Of a stretch of 64,000 bases of DNA, positions 7,570 through 29,730 are shown piece after piece. The stretch spans positions 248,001 through 312,000 of IMG/VR virus record IMGVR_UViG_3300045971_000577. One strand, 5' to 3'. Position numbers and translations under genes: made by a program. Each line of letters opens with the position of its first letter. The first letter of the stretch is position 1. Under the pieces are notes generated by a model. It did no database searches and was not told where the DNA came from. It saw only the letters and a program-made list of their open reading frames with translations.

Positions 7570-7644
7570 TGGTGCGTCTGGAGGGAATCGAACCCTCGTC
7601 ATAGGATTTAGAATCCCGTACTCTAACCGCTGAGCTACAAACGC
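7570..7644 (-). tRNA. Amber suppressor tRNA (anticodon CTA)
   Basis: GCGTTTG/CAGACGC acceptor, ACCA; anticodon arm CGGGA-TTCTAAA-TCCTA; anticodon at 7609-7611. Confidence 0.85.
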
Positions 7645-7653
7645 GAATTTAAT

Positions 7654-7761
7654 GATGTGATCGAAGACGCTACTCTCCGACCTTGCCGCTGCCAACCTTA
7701 TAAATAGATGGCCTCGGATGCTCTTTCGAGCAGTGAATGTGCGCTTTACACTAATCACATC
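7654..7761 (-). ncRNA. Candidate ~108-nt structured RNA upstream of the suppressor tRNA
   Basis: Closing stem GATGTGAT/ATCACATC; TGCTC-GAAA-GAGCA; TCCGA/TCGGA. Confidence 0.5.
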
Positions 7762-7769
7762 GTATGTAC

Positions 7770-7797
7770 ATTATACAGTCATACTACTGCACGTCAA
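7770..7797 (-). promoter_or_regulatory. Sigma70-type promoter driving the small RNA and suppressor tRNA
   Basis: TTGACG-N16-TATAAT. Confidence 0.6.
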
Positions 7798-8111
7798 TCG
7801 GCGTGATTGTACAATTTCCACTTCTTGAAGAAGTTGCGATCTCGATTCTCAGTAATAGGCTGGGTGCAGATAGCACTATATCTCATTCCGTTATCAGGTT
7901 CATAGAACATGTAATATTGGATTCCACGTTCTTCCAGCTTCTCAGCAATGGATGCCAGATCATTCTCATCTTTGGCAGACAACAGGATCAAACTCGAAAT
8001 CCCCTAATTGTCCTGGAACTTCTTGCCTGCTTCATAACAGGCGTGCCCGATTTGAACGATCCTTTGAGCATGAGAAATATCCTCACGAATGAATGTGTAG
8101 ATGTAGCTCAT
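7794..8111 (-). CDS. Pth2-like peptidyl-tRNA hydrolase interrupted by an in-frame TAG (8004-8006)
   Basis: MSYIYTFIREDISHAQRIVQIGHACYEAG...N*GISSLILLSAKDE...FYEPD...SAICTQP; one frame on both sides of the TAG; ATGA-coupled start. Confidence 0.75.
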
Positions 8112-8470
8112 TTGAATGCTTCCTTACGAAGTTCTTGTGCAATCTTCCAGACAGCATCTTGCTCCGACGGAGTAAGCCAACTGTATAACACCGATCCGCG
8201 AACAGACCAGAGTGCGCTATTCAGCGAACCGAATGGTGCTGCACCGTTATCGAGCTTGACTTTGTTAGTGATGGGGAAGAATGACTTACGCAGACGTGAC
8301 TCAGCACCTTCGAGACCTTCGCCCCTCATAACGGAACGATAGATGCACAAAGCGGCAATATCAGCACTGGTAATGTTACGGAGAGCAGCTCGTGCTTTCC
8401 ATTTTGCCCGAGTGTCCGTGAAAACGGGTTGGGACTTTTCTTCGGTAACTTGATTTGTAAAACTAAACAT
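8108..8470 (-). CDS. Hypothetical protein
   Basis: ORF track; AAGGA RBS. Confidence 0.75.
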   Translation of the reverse strand: MFSFTNQVTEEKSQPVFTDTRAKWKARAALRNITSADIAALCIYRSVMRGEGLEGAESRLRKSFFPITNKVKLDNGAAPFGSLNSALWSVRGSVLYSWLTPSEQDAVWKIAQELRKEAFK

Positions 8471-8590
8471 GATTTATTCCTTAAAAATTGGTTTGAATGA
8501 AAACAAAATTGCAATGTGAACTTCAAACGTTCTTAAGAAGAATCAAAATAAACCTACATCATGGTAGTATCTCCGGTTGTTGTAACTGTA

Positions 8591-8796
8591 TTTATGAATT
8601 GTGCAGATCCTCCCAGTTACATGCTGGGCGTGCCACTGTCCAAAGGTGCAACACCAATGGCAAACACTGTTATACACAATTCATAAACACAGATTATCAC
8701 TATAAATGATAATACTAACCCTGTCCGGTATCGCGCTTGCCGGCCTCCTAGCTAAAGAACCAGGTGTACACTTATACTACAGGATATGTGTTTATG
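8591..8796 (-). ncRNA. Candidate structured RNA with two overlapping long helices
   Basis: 10-bp CATAAACACA/TGTGTTTATG and 13-bp TTTATGAATTGTG/CACAATTCATAAA share 6 nt. Confidence 0.45.
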
Positions 8797-8811
8797 ACTT
8801 TGATACAGCAA

Positions 8812-8878
8812 GAAAGGCAGTTGGGTTCGAACCAACAACATTCGCGCAGGACGCCTCTTCCCGTTGGGCTACACCTAT
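8812..8878 (-). pseudogene. Degenerate tRNA (D- and T-arms intact, anticodon arm lost, no CCA)
   Basis: GCC-CAACGGGAAGA-GGC and GTTGG-TTCGAAC-CCAAC. Confidence 0.55.
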
Positions 8879-8992
8879 TGCTATATCAGAGCGTTACTTC
8901 GATACATTGACCCACAGCACCTCTGGCTGATTCTTCCTTCTGGAAAAGAAGGCGTGCTCTATGAACACTACGGTATGTATCTCAGTAACTAA

Positions 8993-9919
8993 CTATAGCA
9001 GAGTCAAAGCTGTTCCGCAAGCTGAACAAAATTTGGCTGTTGCCTTATTTGTGTGGCTGCAGGTCGAGCACTTTTGGGTCGTTTTGACCGTAACTGGTGC
9101 AGCAACTTCAATTGCACCAACAACACCTGCCATACGAAGGATGATTACTTCGGACTTGGCTTCGGAGTTGAATCCGTAAACTGCTTGGAACGATTGCTCA
9201 ACCTTGGATCCCGGAACAGTGATACCTGCTTCGTTCACTTCGGGTGCAACATAGCTATCCATGGTAGGAGTAGATGCAGCAACGCTGTTGGAGAAAACTG
9301 CGTTCGAAGATTGCAAAGTTGCGCTGGTGGATGTTGCGTTGGCAGACATACCGCGCATGACACCCTTTGTCGCTGTGGCAGAAGACAAACTTCCGCCACC
9401 TGCTTCGCTGCTGTTGTAGGTAGCAGACTGTGTTGCATTAGTGGAACCATAGAACGGACCGTCACTGTAGGTATACTGGTCAAAGATTGACTTGCGATAC
9501 GGATGACGATAGCCATACCAGTATTCGTGATGATGAACAGTAGTTGTGATGGTTGGCTTTTCTTGTTCGAACCAATATTCGACACGAACAACACCGTCGT
9601 CAACCTTGATACCACGCGGGCCATCTTCGATTGCTGCGGTACGCTCGATGAACTTGAATGCGTTACCTTCTGTCATGTTGCCGTTGCGAATGAAACGCTT
9701 TAGCTCGACTTCGGAGTTTGCATTTACGATGATTTCTGTGCCGTCAAGGACGTCAGTACCATCGATGTGGAGTGTGAACTTTGCTCTGCGTGAATTTAGA
9801 TTTTTCACGAGGACGGTAAACTCACTACCAAACGGTAGGAGGACCAGGTCTTTTTGTTCACGAAGGATTTTGCCGTTGTGTTTGATTGCCACGGCCAGCT
9901 TATTTTTCATCATATTCAT
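8993..9919 (-). CDS. Phage hypothetical protein with C-terminal zinc ribbon
   Basis: CSTC...FCSACG at the C-terminus; Ser/Thr-rich linker. Confidence 0.8.
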   Translation of the reverse strand: MNMMKNKLAVAIKHNGKILREQKDLVLLPFGSEFTVLVKNLNSRRAKFTLHIDGTDVLDGTEIIVNANSEVELKRFIRNGNMTEGNAFKFIERTAAIEDGPRGIKVDDGVVRVEYWFEQEKPTITTTVHHHEYWYGYRHPYRKSIFDQYTYSDGPFYGSTNATQSATYNSSEAGGGSLSSATATKGVMRGMSANATSTSATLQSSNAVFSNSVAASTPTMDSYVAPEVNEAGITVPGSKVEQSFQAVYGFNSEAKSEVIILRMAGVVGAIEVAAPVTVKTTQKCSTCSHTNKATAKFCSACGTALTLL

Positions 9920-9969
9920 ATTTTCCTTTAAAACAGCACACAGAACAAGTGCTCAAAGTTTCAGTTCTG

Positions 9970-10554
9970 TTAGGTGCTACCCTGTGTAGCATTACTATTT
10001 ATATTTTTACAAAATCGTTCATGCCTTTTTATGTTACAAAATATTATGTTCTTCTTACCGCACCTAACGCATTCTATATATTTGGTGGGGCGAGATCTAT
10101 TAGAACATGCCTTAGAACAATAATATTCGTTGTATTGTCTTTTATCTCCTTTTGTAAAAATCTTAGAGAATGATACGCCGCAATAGCAGGTATACCTATT
10201 TGTTACTCTTTCTATTCGGCGCCCTAACAAAGATCTCTTAGCGATATGCGCTGCGGATTGTTTATACCCCGAAGTTCCTTCGCCACCGTCTGTTTTATTT
10301 CGGAGAATACCTGTACCAATATCTATTCGACCATACCACTGAATCATTCTGCGTTCAATCGCGAATGCACCTAACTCGGTGAGATTATTTTCTAATATCA
10401 ATATTAATGATTTATCCGGCGGTTGTATATGCTCGGTGCGGCTCTTTAGGTAAGCCCTGTTTCCCGAACCTTTACCGATATAATACGGTGTTCCGGCCTT
10501 TGCCGTTCGTGAATCTACTTTTCGTAAATACGCATAAACATAAAATGTTGTCAT
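9970..10554 (-). CDS. GIY-YIG-like homing endonuclease
   Basis: FYVYAYLR...TPYYIGKG; NKTDGGEG. Confidence 0.85.
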
Positions 10555-10670: not shown

Positions 10671-10699
10671 AATATAAACGATCACAAACCGATTGTCAA
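10671..10699 (-). promoter_or_regulatory. Sigma70-type promoter
   Basis: TTGACA-N17-TATATT. Confidence 0.55.
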
Positions 10700-11706
10700 C
10701 CGTTTCTAATAGGAACAAGATTATCTCTAAATATTGCCCAACATTCTTCCCATGTCCATTTACTAGATGATGCCTTTACTACGTCTCGGTTTAGTTTCGA
10801 TGCGGCTAATATTGCGGTGTCTAAATCTTCCGACATGACTCCGTTCACTCCTTGATCGATAATATCTATCGGCCCGGGTACCGGATAACCTGCGACAGGA
10901 GTACCAATGCTCAGTGCCTCAATGATAACAATGCCAAAGGTATCCGTCTTACTCGGAAATGCAAATACATCTGCCCTAGCATAGCTATTTGCAAGCTCTG
11001 TCCCGGATTGATATCCAAGGAACTTGACATTCTTATATTTCGACTTTAATTCTTCAAGGTGTGGTCCGCCACCTACTATTTCGACATTGTATTTGTCCTG
11101 TAACACGCAAAGTGCTTCTAAGTTTTTTTCCTTCGAAACACGACCTACATATAATACAATAGGTGTCAATCCAATGTATGCAGATCGATGAGTAATAGTC
11201 GGTGCAAGAGTAGTTCTATCCACACCACGTGTCCAGGAATATATTTCACCTACAAACCCGTGTTCCTTTAGTTCTTTTACCATTGTCTCGGTTGTTGTAA
11301 GCACTTTTCCACTGTGTCTATGAAACCATCTCACATACATGTATGTGAGATTTTCCGGAATACCATACATAGTTTTTAGAAATTCAGGAAACTTTGTGTG
11401 GTACGAGGTATTATATCTTAGATTATGCCAACCACAATATAATTGTGCTGCCAGGCCTAGTGGACCCTCGGTAGCAATATGTATATGATCTGGATTTTCT
11501 TTCTTGATATATTTTGCAATGAATGGCCAGGATATCTTTACTTCAGGATACCCCGGACAAGAAAAATGTGGTAGCAAAGACGGATTAATACATGCTATAT
11601 CATATCCTTCTCGCTTGGCTAGAATCTCAATATTAGTAAAGGTAGTTACGACACCATTTACTTGATTTGGCAAGTTATCTGTTATTATCAATATCTTTTT
11701 TGTCAT
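10696..11706 (-). CDS. GT4-family glycosyltransferase (Agt-like candidate)
   Basis: PNQVNGVVTT, HIATEGPLG, YVGRVSKEKN, DTFGIVIIEA motifs. Confidence 0.9.
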   Translation of the reverse strand: MTKKILIITDNLPNQVNGVVTTFTNIEILAKREGYDIACINPSLLPHFSCPGYPEVKISWPFIAKYIKKENPDHIHIATEGPLGLAAQLYCGWHNLRYNTSYHTKFPEFLKTMYGIPENLTYMYVRWFHRHSGKVLTTTETMVKELKEHGFVGEIYSWTRGVDRTTLAPTITHRSAYIGLTPIVLYVGRVSKEKNLEALCVLQDKYNVEIVGGGPHLEELKSKYKNVKFLGYQSGTELANSYARADVFAFPSKTDTFGIVIIEALSIGTPVAGYPVPGPIDIIDQGVNGVMSEDLDTAILAASKLNRDVVKASSSKWTWEECWAIFRDNLVPIRNG

Positions 11707-12457
11707 ATATGTTACTTTCTTTCCAATGTATTAGTTCCCAGGAACCGTCGTGATGTTCGACCAATGCTGTTAGTGATTCTACCCAGTCTCCGTCATTCAT
11801 ATATATTATTCCATCTATGTCTTTTATTTCAGCATGATGAATATGGCCACATATAACTCCGTCAAATCCTCTTTTCTTGCAATAGTCTGCAATAGTCTTT
11901 TCAAATTTGAATATAAAATCTACGGACTTCTTAACTTTTATTTTCAGATATTTAGAGAGCGACCAATATCCAAATCCGAATTTATGTCTAATCCAGTTAA
12001 ATTTTGTATTCAATGACAGGATTAGATCGTATGCTCTATCACCTAAGAGGCTTAGCCACGGGGCAAGTCGAGTTATACCATCGAATAGATCTCCGTGGAC
12101 CACTAAGTAGTGTTTTCCGTCTAGCCCGATGTGTTCGGTTTGATTTTGAAATTCGATAGACCCGATGCTTATATGATAATTTAGCAAAGGGCGAATAAAC
12201 TCATCATGATTTCCAATTACATAAATTACTCTTGTCCCATGTTTTGCACATTTCAGCACTCGCCTAACAACATCGGAATGGCTTTGTTTCCATTTTAGTC
12301 TATTTTGTTGAATTTTCCAACCATCAATAATATCACCTACGAGATACAATGTCTCTGCTGTATTTGCCTTTAGAAAATTAGTCAGTTGCGATGCCTTACA
12401 TTCCTTAGATCCGAGATGAACATCGGAAATAAAAATAGATCGGTATTTCTTGATCAT
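11675..12457 (-). CDS. Metallophosphoesterase of the LpxH/YbbF (PlcP-like) family
   Basis: FISDVHLG, GDIIDGW, GNHDE, HGD, CGHIHH, NDGDWVES. Confidence 0.88.
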   Translation of the reverse strand: MIKKYRSIFISDVHLGSKECKASQLTNFLKANTAETLYLVGDIIDGWKIQQNRLKWKQSHSDVVRRVLKCAKHGTRVIYVIGNHDEFIRPLLNYHISIGSIEFQNQTEHIGLDGKHYLVVHGDLFDGITRLAPWLSLLGDRAYDLILSLNTKFNWIRHKFGFGYWSLSKYLKIKVKKSVDFIFKFEKTIADYCKKRGFDGVICGHIHHAEIKDIDGIIYMNDGDWVESLTALVEHHDGSWELIHWKESNIYDKKDIDNNR

Positions 12458-13620: not shown

Positions 13621-14046
13621 TCATGATAGCTTCTGACTCTTTACGATACGTCTAAGTTCGAGTTCTGTGTCTCGCTTCTTTTCCGTAGCTCGTTTGTCGT
13701 ACTCTTTCTTACCCTTTGCAAGTCCAATCGAGAGTTTGTATTTACCTCTCGTTGAATAAATCTTCAACGGCACAAGAGTTAGTCCACGTTCCTTTGTCTT
13801 ACCGATGAGACGTTGGATTTCTTTCTTATGCAAAAGCAACTTACGCGAACGGGTCATATCGTGCTCGGAGCCACCGATGTTAGCGCCCACAAGCATGATG
13901 TTACCATCCATAACTACGCAGTGAGTTCCGGCGATTGAACAGCTCTTAGCCGCAATCGCCTTTACTTCCCAGCCTTCCAGCTTCATTCCACACTCGTATT
14001 GCTCGAGTATTTCATAATCAAAGAAGGCCTTCTGATTTGAAATCAT
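13621..14046 (-). CDS. smpB: SsrA-binding protein
   Basis: [52 protein letters not shown]. Confidence 0.95.
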
Positions 14047-14810
14047 AATTTCTCTTTACAGTTATCAAAATGCCATCTATTCATCGATTCTTTACAGTTA
14101 TCAAAATGCCATCTATTCATCGATCCTTCACCGCCCGACCGTTGGCAGTGCGGGCACTCAACAGTATTTCTTTTTTTACCAAGCCTTGACAATCCGATGT
14201 TAATATTATGTTCTGCCGAATTAGGTTTACCTTTTGCTGCTAAACTCATTTTTTCACGAGTCTCTTGGCTTACTACCTTATTTCGCATTTTCTGTTTTGT
14301 TTCTTCGGACATATTTTGTTTGGCTATGCTCATCTTATATCTCGCATCATCTGACATTGTTTTGCCGATGTTAGCCTCGCGCATTTTCTGTTTTGTTTCT
14401 TCTGTCCGAATTTTACCTGTATTTTTATCACTTATTCTTTGACGAACTTCTTTGGGCATAGATTTACTAGCTAATCCGATAATTTTCCGGGTTGCTGCAG
14501 AATGACTATGACCGGATGCTCCTTCGCCGCCATCGGTTCTGTTTTCTAAAATCCCTGTGCCTAAATCTTTTCGACCATACCACCGAATCATTCTGCGTTC
14601 GATTGCAAATGCACCGAGCTCAGTTAGATTACATTCTAAAATTACAATACGTGATATATCTACAGGAGTGTGTACTCCTGTATTATTCTTTTTATTCCTA
14701 TGATCAACATAAGCTCGATCTCCTGTGCCTTTTCCGATATAGTACGGTGTGCCAACATTAGCGGTTGCCGAGTTACGTGATCTTAAATAGGCATATACAT
14801 AATAATTCAT
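14043..14810 (-). CDS. GIY-YIG-like homing endonuclease with NUMOD3 repeats
   Basis: YYVYAYLR...PYYIGKG; repeated S.ET(K/R).KM. Confidence 0.88.
14053..14124. repeat. Exact 36-bp tandem duplication
   Basis: [12 protein letters not shown] encoded twice. Confidence 0.9.
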
Positions 14811-14876: not shown

Positions 14877-15545
14877 TTACCACATAAGGTCAAAGAAACC
14901 GCGTAACACCTTGTTAACGCTTCCTGTCTTTCCGCTGTTGTGATCCTTTACAACATCGTCTTGAAAACGGTATGTTTGTATCTTATCCCCGCGCATGCCA
15001 GAACCAACCTGTTCTTTGCGGCTTGAATCTAGCGCGAACTTGTGCTCTCTATGTGCGTGTGCGTTTAGTGCCTCTAGCAGGGCTTGCTTCGCCTGATCTT
15101 GGCTATTTTGCCTGGATCGACACTGTGCCGTGGCAGTTTGGCCTGTAGGCAAATACGTTATACGACACGAATTTTGATGTTTGTTGCGGTGTTGGCCGCC
15201 TGCGCCAGTACCGCTGTACCATTCTATTCTAAAATCCGAGTCTTTGAATTCGATATTACGCAATTCGGGATCAGTGATCGCAACTGTTACGGTGCTGGTA
15301 TGAACTCTGCCCTTGCGCTCGGTTGGTGGAATACGCTGTATGCGGTGCCCACCTGCTTCTTTCTCTAACTGTGATAAGTCTGCACCCTCAACTTCTATGA
15401 AAAGTTCTCCGGGGAGATTCCTTATCACGCGATTGATTCAGCCAACTCTGTCAAAGTGGCGTTGGTATGCTGCTGCAAGATCTACAGTGAATAGCTTGCT
15501 GTCTTCTCCGCCCTCAGCTGCGCGTATTTCAATAATTCTTTTCAC
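14877..15545 (-). CDS. prfA: RF1-type class I release factor interrupted by an in-frame TGA (15438-15440)
   Basis: GGAGA RBS + GTG; IIEIRAAEGGEDSKLF, HRIQRIPPTERKGRVHTS (PxT), GAGGQH (GGQ), IQTYRF. Confidence 0.85.
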
Positions 15546-21947: not shown

Positions 21948-21952
21948 AATAT

Positions 21953-22029
21953 TGGCAAGGCAGGTGGGACTCGAACCCACGCAGTCATGGCTCAGAACCA
22001 CGCCACTCTTCCCCTTAAGCTACTGCCCA
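21953..22029 (-). tRNA. tRNA-Gln(CTG)
   Basis: Loop TTCTGAG; GCCA. Confidence 0.88.
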
Positions 22030-22036
22030 ACTGATT

Positions 22037-22111
22037 TGGCGTCCCTATGGGGAATCGAACCCCACTTACCGACGTGAAAGGCCGGCGTCCTAACCGATAG
22101 ACGATAGAGAC
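22037..22111 (-). tRNA. tRNA-Glu(TTC)
   Basis: Loop CTTTCAC. Confidence 0.93.
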
Positions 22112-22119
22112 ATTGTATT

Positions 22120-22196
22120 TGGCAAGCCGAGTCGGACTCGAACCGACGTATTCCTCGTTCAAAGCGAGGTCACTCTTCCCCTTAAGCTACCGGCCA
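22120..22196 (-). tRNA. tRNA-Gln(TTG)
   Basis: Loop CTTTGAA. Confidence 0.88.
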
Positions 22197-22248
22197 ATTG
22201 TTTCAAGTAGGAAGTTTTTTCATGCTTACCTACAAGCGCATGTTCTTC

Positions 22249-22324
22249 TGGAACCCGCATCGGGAGTTGAACCCGAGTTTACATCTTGAGAGGATGTCGT
22301 CCTATACCGTTAGACGATGCGGAT
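22249..22324 (-). tRNA. tRNA-Glu(CTC)
   Basis: Loop CTCTCAA. Confidence 0.88.
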
Positions 22325-22329
22325 ATAAA

Positions 22330-22407
22330 TGGTGCACCTGGCAGGACTCGAACCTGCAACGCACAACTTTTCAGGCTGCCGCTCTACGCGATTGGAGCTA
22401 CAAGTGC
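22330..22407 (-). tRNA. tRNA-Phe(GAA)
   Basis: Loop CTGAAAA. Confidence 0.9.
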
Positions 22408-22411
22408 ATAA

Positions 22412-22483
22412 TGGACCCACCGGAAGGATTCGAACCTTCGTAACTAACGTTCGTAGCGTCAGCACCTGTCCTCAGGCGGTGAG
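22412..22483 (-). tRNA. tRNA-Arg(ACG) with a minimal D-arm
   Basis: Loop CTACGAA; D-arm CCTG-AGGA-CAGG. Confidence 0.7.
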
Positions 22484-22484
22484 A

Positions 22485-22649
22485 TTAGAAGTATCTACCT
22501 TGAGTCTTACGACGCCAGAACTCTCGTTCTATGCGTTCTATTTCTTCCGGGGTAGACGGATTTCTCGATTTGATATATTGTTCAAGTTCTTGAGTGACAT
22601 GCGCCCCAGAGAAGAAATCCTTGAACCAAGCTATGACAGCAACTATCAT
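22485..22649 (-). CDS. Small protein, DUF3563-like (tentative), paralogue 1
   Basis: ELEQYIKSRNPSTPEEIERIEREF; read manually. Confidence 0.6.
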   Translation of the reverse strand: MIVAVIAWFKDFFSGAHVTQELEQYIKSRNPSTPEEIERIEREFWRRKTQGRYF

Positions 22650-22822
22650 TCGTGAAAATATGTAAAGATGTTATTTCTACGTCGTTCGTAAAACTGATGC
22701 TCTAGCCGATCGACATCTTCTGCCGATTGCGGGTTAGCCGAGGCGATGAAAACTTCGAGATTATCAAAATTCTGTCGGGACTTGAAAATGTCCTGAATGT
22801 ATTGAAATAATGTGCTTAACAT
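22646..22822 (-). CDS. Small protein, DUF3563-like (tentative), paralogue 2
   Basis: NLEVFIASANPQSAEDVDRLEHQF; ATGA coupled. Confidence 0.6.
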   Translation of the reverse strand: MLSTLFQYIQDIFKSRQNFDNLEVFIASANPQSAEDVDRLEHQFYERRRNNIFTYFHE

Positions 22823-22923
22823 AATGTTTCCTTAGTGTTTGTACTTATGTATTTATGACAATGCGTGCTGCATTGCAACAAAACATAGTGTAATCGCTAA
22901 GAACCTGCATGTCAATAAACCGA

Positions 22924-22997
22924 TGGTGGTCAGTACAAGAATCGAACTTGTGAAGATAGCTTATGAAACTACCGGTATACCACTTACCTAACTGACC
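22924..22997 (-). tRNA. tRNA-Met or Ile2 (CAT)
   Basis: Loop TTCATAA. Confidence 0.85.
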
Positions 22998-23003
22998 AAA
23001 TGG

Positions 23004-23079
23004 TGGTGCCAAGGACCGGATTCGAACCAGTGACGCGCAACTTTTCAGGCTGCCGCTCTACCAACTGAGCTACCGAGGC
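23004..23079 (-). tRNA. tRNA-Phe(GAA), two acceptor mismatches
   Basis: Loop CTGAAAA. Confidence 0.8.
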
Positions 23080-23087
23080 ATAAAATA

Positions 23088-23161
23088 TGGTGCGGGCTAG
23101 GGGAATCGAACCCCTGCGGTAAAGTTGGCAACCTTACATTCTACCATTAAATTAAGCACGC
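23088..23161 (-). tRNA. tRNA-Gly(GCC)
   Basis: Loop TTGCCAA. Confidence 0.88.
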
Positions 23162-23260
23162 ATTGTAACATTGAGATAGTTGAAGTAGTGTATGTGGAGT
23201 CGAACCAACCTTTAGTTCCCGGGTACACGATGCCCGCTTCAATCAGGCCTATCTCAAATA

Positions 23261-23352
23261 TGGCGGAAGTGGGCGGATTCGAACCCCCTAACCCTTGTTC
23301 AGGATCAAACAGTTTTCAAGACTGGGCTGCTCTCCAAGACAGTAGCACTTCC
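23261..23352 (-). tRNA. tRNA-Ser(TGA)
   Basis: Loop CTTGAAA; long variable arm; GCCA. Confidence 0.85.
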
Positions 23353-23970
23353 ATATAACTTTATAAAATCTTTCCCATATTTATCTATAACATATCTAAA
23401 TATAGGTTGCATATCTTTTTCATATAAAACTGTTACAGATGGATTGGCAGCTAGTTTAGCCTCCCACTGTTCAGATTTATATCCTTTTATTTCAATAAAA
23501 TTTCCATTAACTATAAAATCAGGAATGTAATTTCTATTCCTGTCATTCCATACATATGGCAATTTTGTGTTATTCTTCTGTATATTCGTTCCGTGATCTA
23601 AAGAATATATTACATAAGCCAATTCCCAACTACTGTCACAGAATATGCCTTTATACCAACCTTTCTTACCTCTACCCGATCCGTGTCTGTAACCACCAGT
23701 AGTTAATTTAGCCTTCTTACTGATTCTTTCTTTTCTTAGTTCTTCTAATTCGGGGGTAGATGCCCTGCCAGAGGTTGATCCTTTTATGCCTTTGTTCCAC
23801 GCTGTCTGCAACCCAGTCTTACCTGCATTCCAGGGAATAAATCCTTCATAAAAGCCGGATTTCCAATCTTTTATCTTGATTTTATGATTAGGATTTTCCT
23901 TGCAGTAAAGCTGATGTATTGAACATCCATTTACATTGGCTAAAATCCTCGAACAATAAATGCATTGCAT
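23305..23970 (-). CDS. PD-(D/E)xK (TnsA-like) homing endonuclease
   Basis: CDSSWELAY...YIPDFIV...IEIKGY; C-terminus encoded inside tRNA-Ser. Confidence 0.8.
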   Translation of the reverse strand: MQCIYCSRILANVNGCSIHQLYCKENPNHKIKIKDWKSGFYEGFIPWNAGKTGLQTAWNKGIKGSTSGRASTPELEELRKERISKKAKLTTGGYRHGSGRGKKGWYKGIFCDSSWELAYVIYSLDHGTNIQKNNTKLPYVWNDRNRNYIPDFIVNGNFIEIKGYKSEQWEAKLAANPSVTVLYEKDMQPIFRYVIDKYGKDFIKLYGSATVLESSPVLKTV

Positions 23971-23984
23971 CTATTATTTATCAG

Positions 23985-24024
23985 TCAAGACTGCTGCCGC
24001 TATGCCGATTCGGCTAACGTGTCC
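23985..24024 (-). pseudogene. Orphan 5' half of a tRNA-Ser(TGA)-like gene, cut at the anticodon
   Basis: GGACACGTTAGCCGAATCGGCATAGCGGCAGCAGTCTTGA followed by GATAAATA and the nuclease gene. Confidence 0.6.
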
Positions 24025-24094
24025 AAATAGTTCTCCATGCCCGAAAGCTAACAGTATGCCAAGGAGGTGGCGCAATTCTAATGTATTTATCTTC

Positions 24095-24172
24095 TGGTAC
24101 CCGGATAGAGAATCGAACTCTACATTTTTCCACTTGTAAGGAGGATGGCTTCACCAGCTGCACTCTCCGGGC
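24095..24172 (-). tRNA. tRNA-Val(TAC)
   Basis: Loop CTTACAA. Confidence 0.82.
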
Positions 24173-24413
24173 AAATCTTTCTCAACATAATGCGCCTAGG
24201 GCCGAGTAGGACACGGATCCCATGTTTGATTGTTGTATTCTAGCTTTTGCCAGGTTATTGTACTAGAACATCACGACGCTACATTAGGTAGGGGATTAGC
24301 CCTTTCTGCAACCTTGCACCTAACTCCGCTGCTCGATACCACATCTTGGTTTACATGAATAGAAACAGTTGCGTTATATATTCACAACACCAAGTCGTCC
24401 GGACAACAAATTT

Positions 24414-24489
24414 TGGTACCCCATATGGGATTCGAACCCATACACTCAGTGTTTGAGACTGATACGACTGCCAATTACGTCAACGGGGC
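24414..24489 (-). tRNA. tRNA-Leu(CAA), short variable loop
   Basis: Loop CTCAAAC. Confidence 0.88.
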
Positions 24490-24494
24490 AAATA

Positions 24495-24642
24495 AGCACA
24501 CTCTACGATTAGCTCCTATCCAGGCCTTCCCAGTTCAGCCAGGGCGTCAAGGGTCTCGTCCCCTACGGGATTAGATAGTCGGATATGGTTCCCCGACCAA
24601 GACGGACTGCTAATGCCTCCACACGGTTTGATATATTGTGCT
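24495..24642 (-). ncRNA. Candidate ~150-nt structured RNA
   Basis: AGCACA/TGTGCT, ATTAGC/GCTAAT, GTCGG/CCGAC, TCCC-GTAG-GGGA. Confidence 0.45.
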
Positions 24643-24673
24643 CCCCACAATCCGGCGTAGAGTGAATCAAAAA

Positions 24674-24749
24674 TGGAGTCCAGGTAGGGAATCAAACCCT
24701 AGTGCTTTAGTTTTGCAGACTAAGACAATTATCATTCTGTCACCTGGAC
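24674..24749 (-). tRNA. tRNA-Cys(GCA)
   Basis: Loop CTGCAAA; U73. Confidence 0.9.
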
Positions 24750-24755
24750 ATTATT

Positions 24756-24856
24756 TGGTCGGTGTAGTTGAACTCGCATCAACAAGCCGGGTCATGTCTT
24801 TTGTACATTATGCACAAGACCCGCTGAGGCTTCCTCAGTACCTAGGATATACACCA
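24756..24856 (-). ncRNA. Atypical tRNA-like RNA with CCA and an elongated central arm
   Basis: TGGTGTA/TACACCG-ACCA; GGGTC/GACCC; GTTGA/TCAAC arm. Confidence 0.55.
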
Positions 24857-24865
24857 GTATGAAAA

Positions 24866-24940
24866 TGGGCAGACGGTTAGGAGTTGAACCTAATATATCT
24901 CTTTCACAGAGAGATGTGTTGCCGTTACACTACACGCTGC
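24866..24940 (-). tRNA. tRNA-His(GTG), irregular acceptor stem
   Basis: Loop CTGTGAA; C73 and G-1. Confidence 0.75.
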
Positions 24941-25059
24941 ATTGAATAAATCGGGATGTTTGGCTAGGACCGGGAATCGAACCCTATTGCCGTGCCCCCA
25001 TCGGGCCAGTCCGCAGAGTTTTGGTTGCGAATTTAGATTGCTGAAGCCATCCTTTGAAA

Positions 25060-25215
25060 CTATCTAACGATAACCCACTTTGTGTCAAATGGTTTATCCT
25101 TTTCTTTTCTTTTGAAAATCTTCTTCATCTGTTTACGAAAAAGATCTTTCTCTCGTCCTACATCATGCTCGATGCAGGCTTTGTACATTTCACTAATGAG
25201 TTTACGTTCTTTCAT
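25060..25215 (-). CDS. Small basic hypothetical protein (MKERKLISEMY...)
   Basis: GGAGG RBS; ORF track trimmed. Confidence 0.55.
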   Translation of the reverse strand: MKERKLISEMYKACIEHDVGREKDLFRKQMKKIFKRKEKDKPFDTKWVIVR

Positions 25216-25244
25216 AATACCTCCAGGAGATATTTTATTTATGA

Positions 25245-25320
25245 TGGTACCCCAGATGGGATTCGAACCCACACACCTACGGTCTAAACGTAGTACGACT
25301 GCCAATTACGTCACCGGGGC
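25245..25320 (-). tRNA. tRNA-Leu(TAG), short variable loop
   Basis: Loop TTTAGAC. Confidence 0.88.
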
Positions 25321-25413
25321 AAAGAAAAATTCGGAATAGAAACAGTGTATTCCCCCTTGGAAATCTGTATATTCCTGTTGGTCTGTTGTGTGGCCACACA
25401 ACATTCCACGTTT

Positions 25414-25490
25414 TGGTGACCCTGCACGGGATTGAACCGCGTCTATTCTGGTTTTGGAGACCAGCGCACCACCATTTATGCGTCAGAGCC
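25414..25490 (-). tRNA. tRNA-Trp(CCA) with A8/C9
   Basis: Loop CTCCAAA; CCA. Confidence 0.88.
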
Positions 25491-25514
25491 ATATTTTATT
25501 TTATTATCATTGTT

Positions 25515-25601
25515 TGGCTCCAAAGGTAGGGATCGAACCTACGAAGGCTTGCGCCATATCCCGTTAACAGCGGGGACCGTTACCACTCCGGCCACTTTGG
25601 A
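25515..25601 (-). tRNA. tRNA-Asn(GTT) with a long variable arm
   Basis: Loop CTGTTAA; GGC-GCAA-GCC arm; U1-A72, G73. Confidence 0.85.
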
Positions 25602-25624
25602 ATTGTTCATATAATTTGCATGTC

Positions 25625-25820
25625 TTTTAATTCTTTATGCATTAGAATTGTTAATTTTTTATCTGCAGGAAATTGATTCCATTTAGCAGTATCTTTTTCT
25701 GTTTTATATCCTTTGATCTCAATAAACTCATCTGTCCCTGGCAGATAGAAATCCGGAGTGATCTCGTGCAAATCCTTGATATACTTTTTTCATGGGTACC
25801 TTTCTGTGTTAGTGGACATT
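25625..25820 (-). pseudogene. Remnant of a PD-(D/E)xK endonuclease with an in-frame TGA
   Basis: RYP*KKY...TPDFYL...FIEIKGYKTE resembles 23305-23970; ends approximate. Confidence 0.6.
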
Positions 25821-25851
25821 GCTATTGTATATGTTTGCACGTCTTTGTCAA

Positions 25852-25972
25852 TGGCGTCGCCCCAGGGAATCGAACCCCGACTGCTCCTTTATGAGTGGAT
25901 TGAATTTTGTTGCTGAACGTATCCTTTACAGGATCACTTTCGTTTAGCATGCTACCGTTACATTAAAGCGAC
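25852..25972 (-). ncRNA. tRNA(CAT)-like RNA with a ~50-nt insert containing the TTCAGCAA motif
   Basis: GTCGCTT/GGGCGAC-GCCA acceptor; D- and T-arms; CTCATAA loop after the insert. Confidence 0.6.
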
Positions 25973-25976
25973 ATGA

Positions 25977-26135
25977 TGGAGTCATCCTTCTACTATATAC
26001 GGCTATAAGACCAGTTAGAGATAATAGGAGACGACATTGATTGGTGGACCCTTAAGGTGTATAGTGTAGTGACTTCTTAATGCCCATTGATTGGCGGTCT
26101 AGAGGAAATATATCTTAGGGATCTCTATCCGGACC
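25977..26135 (-). ncRNA. Array of three CCA-terminated acceptor-stem minihelices
   Basis: 26092-26135, 26042-26085 and 25977-26035, each preceded by an ATCAAT spacer. Confidence 0.65.
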
Positions 26136-26142
26136 ATTGATT

Positions 26143-26218
26143 TGGTGGGAGTACTGGGATTCGAACCCAGACCAGTCGGATTAAGAGTCCGCTATGCAAC
26201 CTGTAACACCTCACTCCC
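26143..26218 (-). tRNA. tRNA-Lys(CTT)
   Basis: Loop CTCTTAA. Confidence 0.92.
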
Positions 26219-26468
26219 GAATATTTTGTGGTCGATACTTATAGCGACCAATAATTGCAAGACATCCGATGTTGACTGCATAATTTAGCAGCAACGGATA
26301 GTCTTTCTTAGGGATAATATAGACTGCGGTAAGAACTTCTCCAGCAAACCATAACCCTAACATCCAGGACGAAATGCCCCGGGAATGCTTTTGTTTATAG
26401 GATTGTATTGCTTGTGGTACTGCACACAAGGCAAGCATCATACTTCCTATCCAGCCAATAATTTCCAT
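26211..26468 (-). CDS. PQ-loop / SemiSWEET-like membrane protein
   Basis: IIGWIG..LALCAVPQ, SRGISS; three hydrophobic helices. Confidence 0.8.
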   Translation of the reverse strand: MEIIGWIGSMMLALCAVPQAIQSYKQKHSRGISSWMLGLWFAGEVLTAVYIIPKKDYPLLLNYAVNIGCLAIIGRYKYRPQNIRE

Positions 26469-26481
26469 AGATACCTTTCGT

Positions 26482-26556
26482 TGGCATCCTGTACGAGAGT
26501 CGAACTCGTCTCCTCTGCTTGAAGGGCAGGTCACCTCACCCGAAGTGGAACAGGAC
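26482..26556 (-). tRNA. tRNA-Glu(TTC) with C33 (a shifted register would give TCA)
   Basis: CCTGC-CCTTCAA-GCAGA. Confidence 0.65.
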
Positions 26557-26669
26557 ATAAAATACTATCTGCAGGGGAGTCGAACGCGCCACCCACTGTA
26601 CCATAGATTGGTACGATACACCAGATACCGACCAAGCGACCAATCTCGCTTATGCACGGTTGCAGAACT

Positions 26670-26747
26670 CGGTGCCTCCGAAAGGAATCGAACCTTACGT
26701 CTGCCGATTATCAGTCGGATGCTCTAAAACCATTGAGCTACAGAGGC
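26670..26747 (-). tRNA. tRNA-Ile(GAT)
   Basis: Loop CTGATAA; ends ACCG. Confidence 0.9.
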
Positions 26748-26766
26748 AATATATCAAAACTTTGTG

Positions 26767-26842
26767 TCTGGGATGCAGGATTCGAACCTGCGACCTCTCA
26801 CTTCCAAGGCGAGCCGTCTGACCTGACTGACAATAATCCCAG
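26767..26842 (-). tRNA. tRNA-Pro(TGG), CCA not encoded
   Basis: Loop CTTGGAA. Confidence 0.85.
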
Positions 26843-26912
26843 ACACAAAATTCGTCAACACTGTTCATCTCCAAAGGTGGGATGATACCATTTCATTATA
26901 CCCAGAATGTTA

Positions 26913-26986
26913 TGGTGCCCCAAGACAGAATCGAACTGCCGTTTTCTCCTTACAAGAGAGTTGTCCTACCACTAAACGATAAGGGC
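26913..26986 (-). tRNA. tRNA-Thr(TGT)
   Basis: Loop CTTGTAA by standard numbering. Confidence 0.75.
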
Positions 26987-27044
26987 AATAATAAATCAGT
27001 GTTCTTATTTTTCAATTAACAGTTGCAGAATAGATAAATATGTA

Positions 27045-27566
27045 ATGTTTAAACCTACCTGGCTATATGTAAAACAACACTCAAATACAAAATTATTGTA
27101 TTTTGGTAAAACCGTATCTAATCCTAACAAATATACCGGATCCGGTAAGGTATGGAAAAGACATTTAAAAATACATGGTAAAGAATATGTCCAAACTATA
27201 TGGTCAAAATTATTTACATCTAAAGATGAACTAAGTAATTTTGCAATAGCATTTTCCGAAATATTCGATATAGTTGAATCACCTATGTGGGCAAATCTTA
27301 TACCAGAGAATGGCATAGATGGCGGTGCACCAGGCAGAATTCAATCAATAGAAACAAAAAATAAAATAAGAAATTCTATCAACAATAGACCCAATTTTAA
27401 TCATCTAAAAGGTATTCCAAAATCGGATTCATTTAAAACAAATCACTCATTGTTAATGAAAAATAGGCCACAACTGCGATGCTGTTGTATATTATGCAGA
27501 CATGATATTTGCATAAACAAATTAGATGCACACCAAAACGGTAAACATTGTCTTACAAAAAATTAA
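27045..27566 (+). CDS. GIY-YIG-like homing endonuclease, antisense to the tRNA array
   Basis: PTWLYVKQH...LYFGKT...YTGSGKVW; GATAAATA upstream. Confidence 0.85.
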   Translation: MFKPTWLYVKQHSNTKLLYFGKTVSNPNKYTGSGKVWKRHLKIHGKEYVQTIWSKLFTSKDELSNFAIAFSEIFDIVESPMWANLIPENGIDGGAPGRIQSIETKNKIRNSINNRPNFNHLKGIPKSDSFKTNHSLLMKNRPQLRCCCILCRHDICINKLDAHQNGKHCLTKN

Positions 27567-27568
27567 AC

Positions 27569-27622
27569 AGGTTGCTTATTTTTACATTAACAGTGTAATT
27601 TTTAATTTGCAGAACGCAACCT
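27569..27622 (-). ncRNA. Anticodon-stem-loop-like element, copy 3 (GTT loop)
   Basis: AGGTTGC/GCAACCT stem, GTTCTGCAA motif, TTACA-CTGTTAA-TGTAA. Confidence 0.6.
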
Positions 27623-27631
27623 TTAGAAACT

Positions 27632-27707
27632 TGGCGACGCAGACGGGACTCAAACCCGTGTCGACCTCCTAGACAGGGAGGTGCATAATTCGCTATGCTA
27701 CTGCGCC
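27632..27707 (-). tRNA. tRNA-Asp(GTC)
   Basis: Loop CTGTCTA; GCCA. Confidence 0.9.
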
Positions 27708-27773
27708 ATAATTGAATGATAATGTATTCCGCTGCTTGAACTACCAATGCAACATCGCAACACTATCAAAACT

Positions 27774-27847
27774 TGGTGGACCCACGGAGAATCGAACTCC
27801 GATCAACGACGTGCAAGGCCGCTGTAATCCCATTATACTATGGGCCC
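27774..27847 (-). tRNA. tRNA-Ala(TGC)
   Basis: Loop CTTGCAC; G3:U70. Confidence 0.92.
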
Positions 27848-28003
27848 AATAATTGGTGTCGACCTCAGGAATTCTAGTCGACGTGTGCAGCATTACTAAA
27901 ATAGCCACTATCCAAGAACTCCGTGAAAGGGAGGAGGTAGTATCTGCATGATGTAGTTGGAGAACTTCCATCTCCGCCCTCCTGCTTCCGCGGGGGCTTA
28001 TTC

Positions 28004-28321
28004 TTACAAAGAATCGTGCTTATCTATTAAACTATTTCTTATAAACAAAAGTTTATCTAAATATGTACGAGTCTCTTCATCATCGTTACTCATATTATTA
28101 CAAAAATTATAGAAACTATCTATTTCATCAAGTTCAATACATATTATCGACACTAACGATTTGCGACTTCCTATGCCTGTTTTTATAAAATTATCTATCA
28201 TTTCTGTTGTCTCGGCATATGATTTTTCTATATCGCTTAATCGTGTTTCGACCGAGCGATTATGTTTATCTTTCATGATATGAGAGTTCCTATCTTCATT
28301 ATCGAACTCAGATAGTCTCAT
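28004..28321 (-). CDS. Hypothetical protein
   Basis: ORF track. Confidence 0.65.
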   Translation of the reverse strand: MRLSEFDNEDRNSHIMKDKHNRSVETRLSDIEKSYAETTEMIDNFIKTGIGSRKSLVSIICIELDEIDSFYNFCNNMSNDDEETRTYLDKLLFIRNSLIDKHDSL

Positions 28322-28560
28322 AATATAACTCCAGTGGATTTATATAACTCTAATTTTATCTCATATATTTTCGAAATAGCTGATAATACTTCTTTTTTTT
28401 GATGAAATTCTATAAGCTTTTTTGTAAATTCATTAGTTTCATCCCTGTGATTTCCGAGTATATCGTCAATTTCTTTAGAATATTCTCTCATTAACTTCTG
28501 TTCATTGTAGAACGGTAACGCTGAATTGAGCGGTCTATCAGGTAATGGTGGATAAATCAT
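28318..28560 (-). CDS. Hypothetical protein
   Basis: ORF track; GGAG RBS. Confidence 0.65.
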   Translation of the reverse strand: MIYPPLPDRPLNSALPFYNEQKLMREYSKEIDDILGNHRDETNEFTKKLIEFHQKKEVLSAISKIYEIKLELYKSTGVIL

Positions 28561-28725
28561 AAAATACTCCTAGCATAATAGCAGTATTTATCTAATAAAT
28601 TCGAGACTACCGTACGATAGTTGCGTCTCGAAAGAGCAAGTCTTACACCATACTTCACGGCAATCTAAGGCTGGTTCACCAGCATCCGCTACTTGGGACT
28701 CTAACCCTTCGTCTATCCCGAAACT

Positions 28726-28808
28726 TGGTGGATCATTGCGGACTTGAACCGCAACATGAAGAGGCTCGCCGGGCGATAACGTTCATGCCATGCCGATCAA
28801 CATGACCC
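28726..28808 (-). ncRNA. Ala-identity tRNA-like RNA lacking an anticodon loop
   Basis: GGGTCAT/ATGATCC-ACCA (G3:U70); T-arm TGCGG-TTCAAGT-CCGCA; CATGAA/TTCATG arm. Confidence 0.65.
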
Positions 28809-28815
28809 ATATTTT

Positions 28816-28889
28816 TGGTGCACGGAGGTGGGTTCGCTCACCCTTTCGCCGGGTTTTAGCCGGTACCATCACTAATCTGGCTCTCGTGC
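28816..28889 (-). tRNA. Atypical tRNA with AAA anticodon (Phe-like)
   Basis: CCGG-CTAAAAC-CCGG; degenerate T-loop; ACCA. Confidence 0.55.
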
Positions 28890-28896
28890 GTTGATT

Positions 28897-28970
28897 TGGT
28901 GGACCGCCGGGGAATCGAACCCCGATCTGTGACGTGCAAGGCCAATATAATCCCATTATACTAGCGGCCC
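28897..28970 (-). tRNA. tRNA-Ala(TGC)
   Basis: Loop CTTGCAC; G3:U70. Confidence 0.9.
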
Positions 28971-28975
28971 ATATT

Positions 28976-29062
28976 TGGTGATGACTATAGGATTCGAACC
29001 TATTCAGGCATAAGCCAACAGGGTTACAGCCTGTCACCGCTCTCCAACTCGATCGCGTCACC
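28976..29062 (-). tRNA. tRNA-Tyr(GTA)
   Basis: Loop CTGTAAC; long variable arm. Confidence 0.92.
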
Positions 29063-29071
29063 AAAAATTCT

Positions 29072-29348
29072 TGTAAGCACTGTCTGCGGCGTTTCAGCCC
29101 ATCTCAGATCAATGCTTATAGTAAAATACACAAGAATATTCACTGTAGGGCGAATAATGACCGCCGTGCCCTACACCTACGCGAACTTGTATACTTTACT
29201 ATCCGGTTTTTACCACTCGCGTTATCGCCACGAGCTTCTCATCCCCGAACACGCCCTCTTTCTCCACATGTTTTTATACAGTGCGCGGACCGGGCTGCGT
29301 TCCCGGAATACTTCACACTGCCCGTAATACGCCGAAGCTTAACACGGG
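29072..29348 (-). ncRNA. Candidate ~280-nt structured ncRNA, first product after the attenuator
   Basis: CCCGT/ACGGG, CAGTG/CACTG, CCGGG/CCCGG, GTAGGGC/GCCCTAC, TAAGCA/TGCTTA stems. Confidence 0.55.
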
Positions 29349-29351
29349 AAT

Positions 29352-29443
29352 AAAAAAAGCCGCCTAGTTTCCTGGGCGGCTTCCTTTTATAAATTTTCTG
29401 GATACTTTTTAGTTGTGTCCAGACTCCTTATAAAAGGAAGCCG
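29352..29443 (-). promoter_or_regulatory. Transcription attenuator (terminator/antiterminator)
   Basis: Terminator AAGCCGCCCAG-GAAA-CTAGGCGGCTT plus U-tract; its 5' arm is sequestered by a perfect 16-bp helix (29428-29443 with 29377-29392). Confidence 0.85.
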
Positions 29444-29585
29444 TCTTAATCGGATCTTGTTCACGGATACTATTTGTGGGTGTTGTAAACCCGACCAATG
29501 CCCAATAACCCTTACCGGCGCAGAGGCGCTCGGAGGCTAAAGCCACCTTATGCATCGCGTTCAGTTTTAGTGAGTTAGTAAACAT
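29409..29585 (-). CDS. Attenuator leader peptide (58 aa)
   Basis: ORF ends within the antiterminator loop; contains all 20 amino acids. Confidence 0.7.
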   Translation of the reverse strand: MFTNSLKLNAMHKVALASERLCAGKGYWALVGFTTPTNSIREQDPIKTASFYKESGHN

Positions 29586-29701
29586 TTGTAATTCCAAAAT
29601 CCTAAGTTAGATCAGTTCGTGTGCTGGCATCACCTGCACAAAGTTATTTATCATCTGCGTAAAAAACCCTGGTTATATAGGTTCTTTACTACCTTGCCAT
29701 A

Positions 29702-29730
29702 AGTGTATGCGTTTATAGTGAATCTGTCAA
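29702..29730 (-). promoter_or_regulatory. Sigma70-type promoter for the leader and tRNA array
   Basis: TTGACA-N17-TACACT; a late motif GATAAATA also lies near 29645. Confidence 0.65.

Follow-up and report, generated by a model that had tools for sequence, protein, structure and literature searches.

Release-factor genes that are controlled at a stop codon have been described before. In prfB, the gene of RF2, an early and conserved in-frame UGA that is passed by a +1 frameshift decides whether the full-length class-I release factor is made, and in plants, according to the part of the report available to us, the output of eRF1 is autoregulated by stop-codon read-through (PMC5397192). In the trp, his and phe attenuators, a leader open reading frame (ORF) is combined with a U-tract terminator and an overlapping antiterminator whose 5′ arm lies under the ribosome at the leader stop codon. 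Among phages, the accessible text on genomes of more than 200 kb lists many tRNAs, RF1/RF2, tmRNA and SmpB (Al-Shayeb et al. 2020, PMC7162821), and the part available on recoded phages describes phage suppressor tRNAs together with a release factor (Borges et al., 10.1101/2021.08.26.457843). Here we analyse a stretch of 64,000 nucleotides (positions 248,001 to 312,000 of IMG/VR record IMGVR_UViG_3300045971_000577; "the window") that lies within the 369,145-bp record of a jumbo phage from a pond metagenome, and in particular its RF1-like gene, which is interrupted by an in-frame TGA, and a tRNA array that is headed by a candidate leader-peptide attenuator. The tRNA arrays and translation factors of phages tend to be viewed as constitutive supplements, and these two elements argue otherwise. 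Both appear to be unreported, since we found no description of them in the literature that we searched; the accessible parts of the two phage reports mention no in-frame stop in RF1, and that of Al-Shayeb et al., which lists genes, mentions no attenuator ahead of tRNAs either.

The RF1-like gene is composed of the following parts:

15441-15545, minus strand: N-terminal piece of 35 codons, with a GTG start at 15545 and GGAG six bases upstream.
15438-15440, minus strand: in-frame TGA, codon 36, at a conserved Trp position of RF1.
14877-15437, minus strand: C-terminal piece of 186 codons with the PPT and GGQ motifs, ending in TAA at 14879-14877.

Several comparisons place this gene with RF1. The NCBIfam model prfA gives 145 bits, as compared to 87 for prfB and 39 for prfH, the Pfam domains PCRF and RF-1 are both present, and comparison with solved structures yields 120-137 bits for RF1 versus approximately 75 for RF2. 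The gene carries a PxT-type motif, PPT, within IQRIPPTERKGRVHTST, as well as GAGGQH, and the consensus of 71 sequences has both motifs, with most columns invariant. The N-terminal piece is equivalent to the beginning of domain 2 of RF1 and matches positions 107-136 of the prfA model, and the column of the TGA is aligned to a Trp of Thermotoga maritima RF1. The gene begins at about residue ~112 of the 360 residues of E. coli RF1, such that domain 1 is absent, and its 145 bits lie below the cut-off of 400-423 bits for the full-length prfA equivalog.

A search with the C-terminal piece returned 259 viral contigs, and all figures for RF1 loci given below refer to the 80 that were kept (61-99% identity, on contigs of up to 524 kb). 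The layout of the gene is identical and the TGA occupies the same codon in all 80 loci, and hence in 71 of 71 distinct gene sequences. Across these 71 sequences, the entropies of the three codon positions are 0.63/0.41/1.32 upstream of the TGA and 0.69/0.50/1.44 downstream, in a single frame, and this matching, coding-type pattern on both sides argues that the two halves evolve as a single translated frame. The codon before the TGA is GGC in 71 loci, GGA in five and GGT in four, and the following base is A in 48, G in 21, C in 11 and T in none; after the genuine TGA stops of the window, C and T are each found five times, G three times and A once. Since an early interruption is found both here and in a second gene of the window, the PTH2-like gene discussed below, one might suppose that the in-frame stops reflect decay, i.e., that these genes are pseudogenes or products of assembly errors. 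For the RF1-like gene, this is excluded by the presence of the TGA in 71 distinct sequences and by the coding-type substitution on either side of it. The comparison thus shows that a full-length RF1-like protein would require read-through of UGA at codon 36, and we take the TGA to be programmed read-through and not decay. The UGA-gated RF1 that the initial annotation of this region had proposed is in this sense upheld, with a TGA that is invariant in 80/80 loci.

The gate would also explain how the gene appears in databases. Within the length range searched, the protein database holds 3318 RF1-like relatives, and their calls either start just past the stop (~163-192 aa) or extend over 222 aa with a W at this position; three of three W-bearing calls that were checked against the DNA have TGA there. 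More distant relatives carry stops at neighbouring codons. In L126 (404-1081, 66% identity), the TGG is kept and an in-frame TAG follows three codons later, and in L130 (551-1222) and L131 (80-751), both at 46% identity, the TGG is kept and a TGA follows four codons later. L132 (44% identity) has a TGA at the canonical site, and L128 (49% identity) is uninterrupted and has the TGG form. Viral scans with distant RF1 homologues gave one partial locus for P0137 and none for P0129. These alternative nearby stops suggest that the gate has arisen repeatedly, and their recurrence in distant lineages makes an early in-frame stop a recurrent, selected trait of this phage RF1 family.

How might the UGA be passed? 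Most plausibly, it would be read as Trp by a near-cognate Trp-tRNA, of the host as well as of the phage (25414-25490), in competition with host RF2. The phage tRNA-Trp has an ordinary anticodon stem of 5 bp; its C9 and its Watson-Crick 11-24 pair are features that we take to recall E. coli variants that misread UGA. With respect to a possible function, the UGA may keep RF1 output low within a strongly transcribed tRNA operon, or else it may raise RF1 output under RF2 limitation or after an accumulation of phage tRNAs, which would couple RF1 output to RF2 activity and to the supply of Trp-tRNA.

RF1 does not recognise UGA, and the gate therefore would not constitute a self-feedback of the prfB type. 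Whereas prfB shifts to the +1 frame, the phage gene continues in the zero frame after its UGA, which implies read-through, and in further contrast to prfB it encodes a phage-borne, RF1-type factor without domain 1 that is blind to the stop codon in its own gene. Any feedback would for this reason report the activity of RF2 or Trp-tRNA, and not the level of the factor itself. If this is true, the output of the gated RF1 would reflect the activity of host RF2 or the load of phage tRNAs, which would make the gate a cross-sensing counterpart to the frameshift of prfB. The plant system, as far as the available part of the report describes it, shares with the phage gene the control of release-factor output via stop read-through, but it is eukaryotic, is coupled to nonsense-mediated decay, and involves a factor that does recognise its stop (PMC5397192). 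The RF1-like gene would thus be a third example, and a phage-borne one, of a release-factor gene that is controlled at a stop codon.

The second element heads the tRNA array and comprises:

29702-29730, minus strand: promoter-like TTGACA-N17-TACACT, upstream of the leader ORF.
29409-29585, minus strand: leader ORF of 58 codons, with ATG at 29585 and TAA at 29411-29409.
29377-29443, minus strand: predicted antiterminator hairpin P1 of 16 bp plus 6 bp, with arms at 29443-29415 and 29405-29377.
29350-29387, minus strand: predicted intrinsic terminator P2, a GC-rich stem followed by U7.
17544-29062, minus strand: tRNA array, with 26 tRNAs found by ARAGORN, tRNA-Lys(UUU) at 18697-18767 and a degenerate tRNA-His-like stretch at 24876-24933.

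The 5′ arm of P1 is formed by the final ~11 codons of the leader, the stop codon of which lies within the P1 loop, and the 3′ arm of P1 shares 29387-29377 with the 5′ arm of P2, so that the two hairpins are mutually exclusive. Folding of 29340-29600 to minimum free energy (MFE) yields the P1 form (-83.1 kcal/mol, z = -4.4). A search with an 18-nt motif from the P1/P2 overlap gave 13 viral contigs, 12 of them real, and the following counts refer to these 12. In each of them, the element lies 5′ of a tRNA array on the same strand, and no tRNA is found 5′ of it in any, even where 7-8.6 kb are available to look at. The leader ORF is retained throughout (~45-62 aa), always with its stop in the P1 loop; the insertions and deletions that the alignment shows are multiples of three, and the peptides share a conserved C-terminal pattern, ASFYK[EDG][ST][GS]x-stop. 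A search with the leader peptide itself gave relatives at 50-72% identity. Over the 12 sequences, P1 is 90.9% paired with three compensatory pairs and P2 is 95.2% paired with one. P1 is the stabler hairpin in all 12 (-22 to -35 versus -14 to -19 kcal/mol), and in full folds of three sequences it dominates and reduces the terminator stem to a few pairs. Pairing further upstream in the MFE fold of the window is absent from L114-L116 and L118. Within 10 kb of the RF1 loci, a covariance model found no significant further copies of the attenuator.

The element thus has the components of leader-peptide attenuators, i.e., a leader ORF, a terminator and an exclusive antiterminator, placed such that a ribosome at the stop codon would favour the terminator. 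In the absence of a ribosome, P1, which forms first and is stabler, would allow RNA polymerase to continue into the tRNAs, whereas a ribosome translating up to the leader stop would cover the 5′ arm of P1, let P2 form and cause termination. Slow, stalled or absent translation of the leader would consequently raise transcription of the tRNA array. By this logic, which we infer from the arrangement of its parts, the attenuator looks like a conditional and not a constitutive expression device. It differs from the trp, his and phe attenuators in that its target is a phage tRNA array and not an amino-acid operon, and in that its leader is long (~45-62 codons) and has no obvious run of regulatory codons. 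A conserved 1:2 hairpin as in those attenuators was also not found in the phage element, and the default without a ribosome for this reason appears to be read-through and not termination.

The promoter-like sequence ahead of the leader is recurrent: five exact copies of TTGACA-N17-TACAYT, this one included, lie on the minus strand (22887-22915, 29702-29730, 29795-29823, 30480-30508 and 30589-30617). Allowing up to one mismatch gives nine matches against 1.1 expected, a number that was reached in 0 of 100 shuffles, and the recurrent motif probably represents a class of phage promoter. Between promoter-like sequence and leader ORF, a further near-invariant motif, AGATGATAAATAACTTTGT, is found (window 29638-29656; columns 51-95 of alignment A2), and it is followed by a short hairpin whose stem sequence varies among contigs while the pairing is kept; transcription may start in this region, or a protein may bind there.

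We asked how far these two elements travel together with the other translation genes of the window by scoring co-distribution within ~10 kb on each side of the 80 RF1 loci. tRNAs are found near 73 loci, with at least five of them in 54 of these 73, and 945 of 945 tRNAs lie on the strand of RF1. A tmRNA is present near ten loci, in nine of them detected by ARAGORN 0-1.3 kb downstream of RF1 and in one (L013) by Rfam, whereas the PTH2-like gene is found near eight, the amber suppressor tRNA(CUA) near six and SmpB near two. The stable core is thus the tRNA array with the gated RF1, to which tmRNA, SmpB, the amber suppressor and the PTH2-like gene were added in a lineage-specific manner, within the nearer clade of the window. 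An ORF with NUMOD3 motifs between RF1 and SmpB/tmRNA is a further sign of mosaic assembly. On balance, we think it rather probable that the region is a translation-supplement block that is transcribed from the minus strand, downstream of standard-code structural genes, and that it is a mosaic whose parts were acquired separately, with genuine devices for conditional expression in two of them, the attenuator and the gated RF1.

Several observations weigh against this reading. For the RF1-like gene, RNAalifold revealed no conserved structure around the TGA, which leaves a SECIS-like or read-through-stimulating hairpin, considered as a candidate, unsupported, and an opal suppressor tRNA(UCA) is absent within 10 kb of the 80 RF1 loci; any mechanism and efficiency of read-through are therefore tentative. 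For the attenuator, P1 and P2 show modest covariation, as there is hardly any sequence variation in the element, the Shine-Dalgarno-like sequence of the leader is weak (GGA only), and the leader displays neither a regulatory run of a single codon nor a conserved pause hairpin. A copy of the promoter-like motif also lies inside the array (22915-22887), which would limit the reach of the attenuator. Finally, the co-distribution covers flanks of ~10 kb only, such that partners may sit elsewhere in those genomes.

The initial annotation had gone further and had proposed that all of these parts form one coordinated surveillance-and-rescue circuit, which would be switched on when host decoding or termination fails and would counteract anticodon nucleases, toxin-antitoxin systems and abortive infection. 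Some of our findings speak for such a circuit. The logic of the attenuator would provide more tRNA transcription upon ribosome stalling, the UGA gate of RF1 is conserved, and the parts are clustered on a single strand. Furthermore, the leader has a conserved stretch within P1 and immediately ahead of it in which codons for Asn, Glu, Gln, Asp, Lys and Tyr abound, and the tRNAs that read these codons are targets of known anticodon nucleases. A counter-defence role of phage tRNAs is, moreover, documented (PMC10264068, PMC11555353, PMC11464382). However, the co-distribution at the 80 RF1 loci is patchy, which had been named beforehand as an outcome that would count against a coordinated system; the stop in the PTH2-like gene is not conserved; tRNA mimics are not numerous; and neither a host defence gene nor a target of one is in evidence. 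Gating on UGA failure would also bring no direct rescue, because an RF1 that cannot terminate at UGA cannot simply stand in for failing UGA termination. We therefore regard the unified counter-defence circuit as an unlikely hypothesis, in which the anti-defence role is suggested by analogy with the literature. Its individual elements have fared unevenly. The notion of a stall-sensing attenuator over about 30 tRNAs holds as far as a conserved attenuator architecture in 12 contigs is concerned, but its reach was overstated in view of the internal promoter motif, and the idea that each control element is conditional agrees with the attenuator and the UGA in RF1, but not with the TAG in the PTH2-like gene, which is missing in the relatives examined.

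A further proposal would be that a translation-state-responsive regulon is present in jumbo phages of this lineage, in which the attenuator lifts tRNA transcription when decoding falters and RF1 tracks UGA read-through. We consider this possible, if rather doubtful. In view of the two elements as such, phages may tune these genes to the state of the host translation machinery.

The second interrupted gene of the window and the tRNA next to it are:

7794-8111, minus strand: PTH2-like gene (predicted PTH2 fold); 105 codons, interrupted in frame by TAG at 8006-8004 (codon 36).
7570-7644, minus strand: amber suppressor tRNA(CUA), well-formed (66.9 bits), ~150 nt 3′ of the PTH2-like gene.

An identity as a bacterial-type Pth was rejected, since the respective motifs are absent. 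The window gene and its nearest relatives score 15.4-17.8 bits with Pfam PF01981 and thus remain below the gathering cut-off of 23, though 14 of 32 homologues match this family at E <= 0.01 (best 7e-6). A sequence profile of the family found no relatives in the PDB, and a single-sequence AlphaFold2 prediction was unusable (pLDDT 54.7). The model that was built from relatives reached a pLDDT of 89.8, and the top 13 hits of a PDB structure search with it were all PTH2, with TM-scores of 0.69-0.75 save for one at 0.58. R10, Q21, H24 and D76 are invariant (alignment A4). The gene is therefore predicted to have the fold of the archaeal/eukaryotic-type PTH2 proteins (Bit1/PTRH2, MJ0051, SsoPth2), but it differs from them in its sequence identity of just 10-17% and its score below the Pfam cut-off, and its role in hydrolysis is putative.

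The TAG of this gene differs from the TGA of RF1 in its distribution. Three of three relatives that were read directly (60-63% identity) have a Lys codon at this position, and homologues (157 in number) have full-length gene calls, with 93-114 aa among the 120 listed and 102-114 aa in nearly all of these. The initial annotation's UAG-gated Pth thus stands as a PTH2-fold gene with an in-frame TAG, whereas the TAG itself is specific to this genome. It is known from the source assembly alone, as a second sample that bears the phage has no contig across the site, and this uniqueness would be in keeping with decay of the gene. However, the word depth in the source sample is ~39 over the TAG with zero differences, which makes an assembly error unlikely, and an amber suppressor lies only 150 nt downstream. 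Taking both interrupted genes together, we regard decay as highly improbable. The adjacency of the gene to a tRNA(CUA) is kept in six other loci (L002, L005, L006, L008, L015 and L105), which argues that the suppressor is older than the TAG. Most simply, the TAG would represent a recent change from Lys to amber, and it would be tolerated because the suppressor adjoins the gene.

The amber suppressor itself had been predicted by the initial annotation, and the tRNA(CUA) bears this out. It is at best 65-71% identical to any other tRNA of the window, and identities among the relatives' suppressors range over 64-87%; comparison with both sets gave no amino-acid identity for it. In L015 (15592-15740), amber (CUA) and ochre (UUA) suppressor tRNAs stand in tandem. 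ARAGORN predicts four-base anticodons (ctaa, tgta) in other relatives (L105 3245-3319 and L108 4437-4523), and a tRNA of L012 with an enlarged anticodon loop (13817-13893) lies at the site of the relatives' suppressor.

The combination of suppressor tRNA and RF1 resembles what the available part of the report on the TGA-recoded Jade phages calls a "code change module" (10.1101/2021.08.26.457843), and it begs the question whether the block is part of a partial code change, in which a suppressor tRNA and a release factor are made early and stop-interrupted genes elsewhere in the 369 kb are expressed thereafter, as a means of temporal control. Two genes of the window do have in-frame stops, and the tandem suppressors of L015 would also fit. 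However, the structural genes (30.9-64 kb), among them the major head protein (59612-60784; PHROGs, 1e-93) and tail-fibre-like proteins, are long, uninterrupted ORFs in the standard code, and gene ends are ordinary, with TAA in 27, TGA in 14 and TAG in five of 46 confident genes of the window, which argues that the genome is not globally recoded. When segment pairs that share a frame were simply listed, no other gene of the window emerged as convincingly interrupted by TAG or TGA, and the lack of tRNA(UCA) near the RF1 loci also speaks against a code change. The Jade-phage module is, as far as the accessible text goes, itself in standard code, whereas here the RF1 gene is interrupted. We thus find it quite unlikely that the block serves a partial code change. 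In-frame stops are not widespread among the window genes, as they would be in recoded phages (code 15 or code 4), and the locus further differs from those described in the available part of that work by its standard-code structural genes, by pairing an amber suppressor with a UGA in RF1, and by a translation block without an aminoacyl-tRNA synthetase. A codon-usage log-likelihood that was trained on the long structural genes was dropped as a means of finding interrupted genes, because early-type genes are indistinguishable from noise in it; SmpB, for instance, scored 0.02 per codon.

With respect to the tRNA complement, ARAGORN finds 33 tRNAs and one tmRNA in the window, to which Rfam adds the tRNA-Lys(UUU) at 18697-18767 and a partial tRNA at 24876-24933. 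This gives 34 confirmed tRNAs, all on the minus strand: 26 at 17544-29062, the Lys(UUU) and seven at 248-7644. The Lys(UUU) was considered as an opal suppressor and rejected on account of its anticodon. The many tRNA fragments or mimics that the initial annotation had announced did not materialize, since a permissive Rfam scan of 5-31 kb gave two tRNA-like extras only: the partial tRNA, which is tRNA-His(GUG)-like and has a defective acceptor stem that pairs at four of seven positions, and a weak candidate at 5370-5471 (26.6 bits, sub-threshold) with a hairpin insert of ~30 nt.

Some of the regular tRNAs have unusual proportions. Bacterial tRNA-Leu is expected to have a long variable arm; three closely similar tRNAs with the Leu anticodons UAA, CAA and UAG (17765-17840, 24414-24489 and 25245-25320) measure 76 nt and lack it, and a canonical tRNA-Leu(UAG) of 86 nt is found at 5692-5777. 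The tRNA-Tyr(GUA) at 26913-26986 is short (74 nt), and the tRNA-Asn(GUU) at 25515-25601 is long-armed (87 nt). In two relatives, GOLLD RNAs with an embedded tRNA (L017 959-1414 and L061 5462-5924; 223 and 210 bits) are part of the tRNA array that precedes the gated RF1.

Downstream of RF1, the window carries:

14043-14810, minus strand: ORF with NUMOD3 motif, homing-endonuclease type, between the RF1-like gene and SmpB.
13621-14046, minus strand: SmpB.
13189-13528/13535, minus strand: permuted (two-piece) tmRNA with the tag ANDSFYTEALAA, which ends in ALAA.

The tmRNA and SmpB of the initial annotation are both confirmed. The RNA scores 89.6 bits with Rfam tmRNA_permuted (gathering 47) and 87.7 with beta_tmRNA (gathering 84), and its tag has a degron-like ALAA end; SmpB matches Pfam at 5e-46 and the NCBIfam equivalog at 160 bits (cut-off 130). 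In L013, the permuted tmRNA directly follows SmpB as it does in the window, while in other relatives the tmRNA comes almost directly after RF1, where the window has the NUMOD3 ORF in between. The tags of the permuted tmRNAs downstream of RF1 in L002, L003, L005, L008 and L012 vary widely in length: the shortest comprise 10-11 residues (ANNEMFALVA, AANDAVFALAA), and the longest comprise 25-26 and end in LLAA or LAA.

Over the C-terminal pieces of the RF1-like and PTH2-like genes, SmpB and the leader peptide, the window matches the 369,145-bp record at 99-100% protein identity. All genes from coordinate 1 to ~40.8 kb lie on the minus strand, and a megablast search with a query of 8.9 kb gave no match among GenBank phages, not even a near one. 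Homing-endonuclease-type ORFs are dispersed over the translation block (14043-14810, 29820-30473, 9970-10554 and 23305-23970); two of these four have NUMOD3 motifs, one has a weak match to endonuclease I, and one has an N-terminus that was judged by eye to be GIY-YIG-like, without Pfam support. Besides tRNAs, small ORFs and endonuclease-like ORFs, the array holds a multihaem cytochrome c (19427-20176) with several CXXCH motifs and a hydrophobic N-terminus and, adjacent to this gene, that of a protein of 553 aa (20173-21834) without family matches; the two are unusual as phage cargo. Further genes that lie among those for translation encode a pyrimidine-dimer glycosylase-like protein (Pyr_excise, 6821-7303), a GT4 glycosyltransferase (10696-11706), a metallophosphoesterase (11675-12457) and a small PQ-loop membrane protein (26211-26441).

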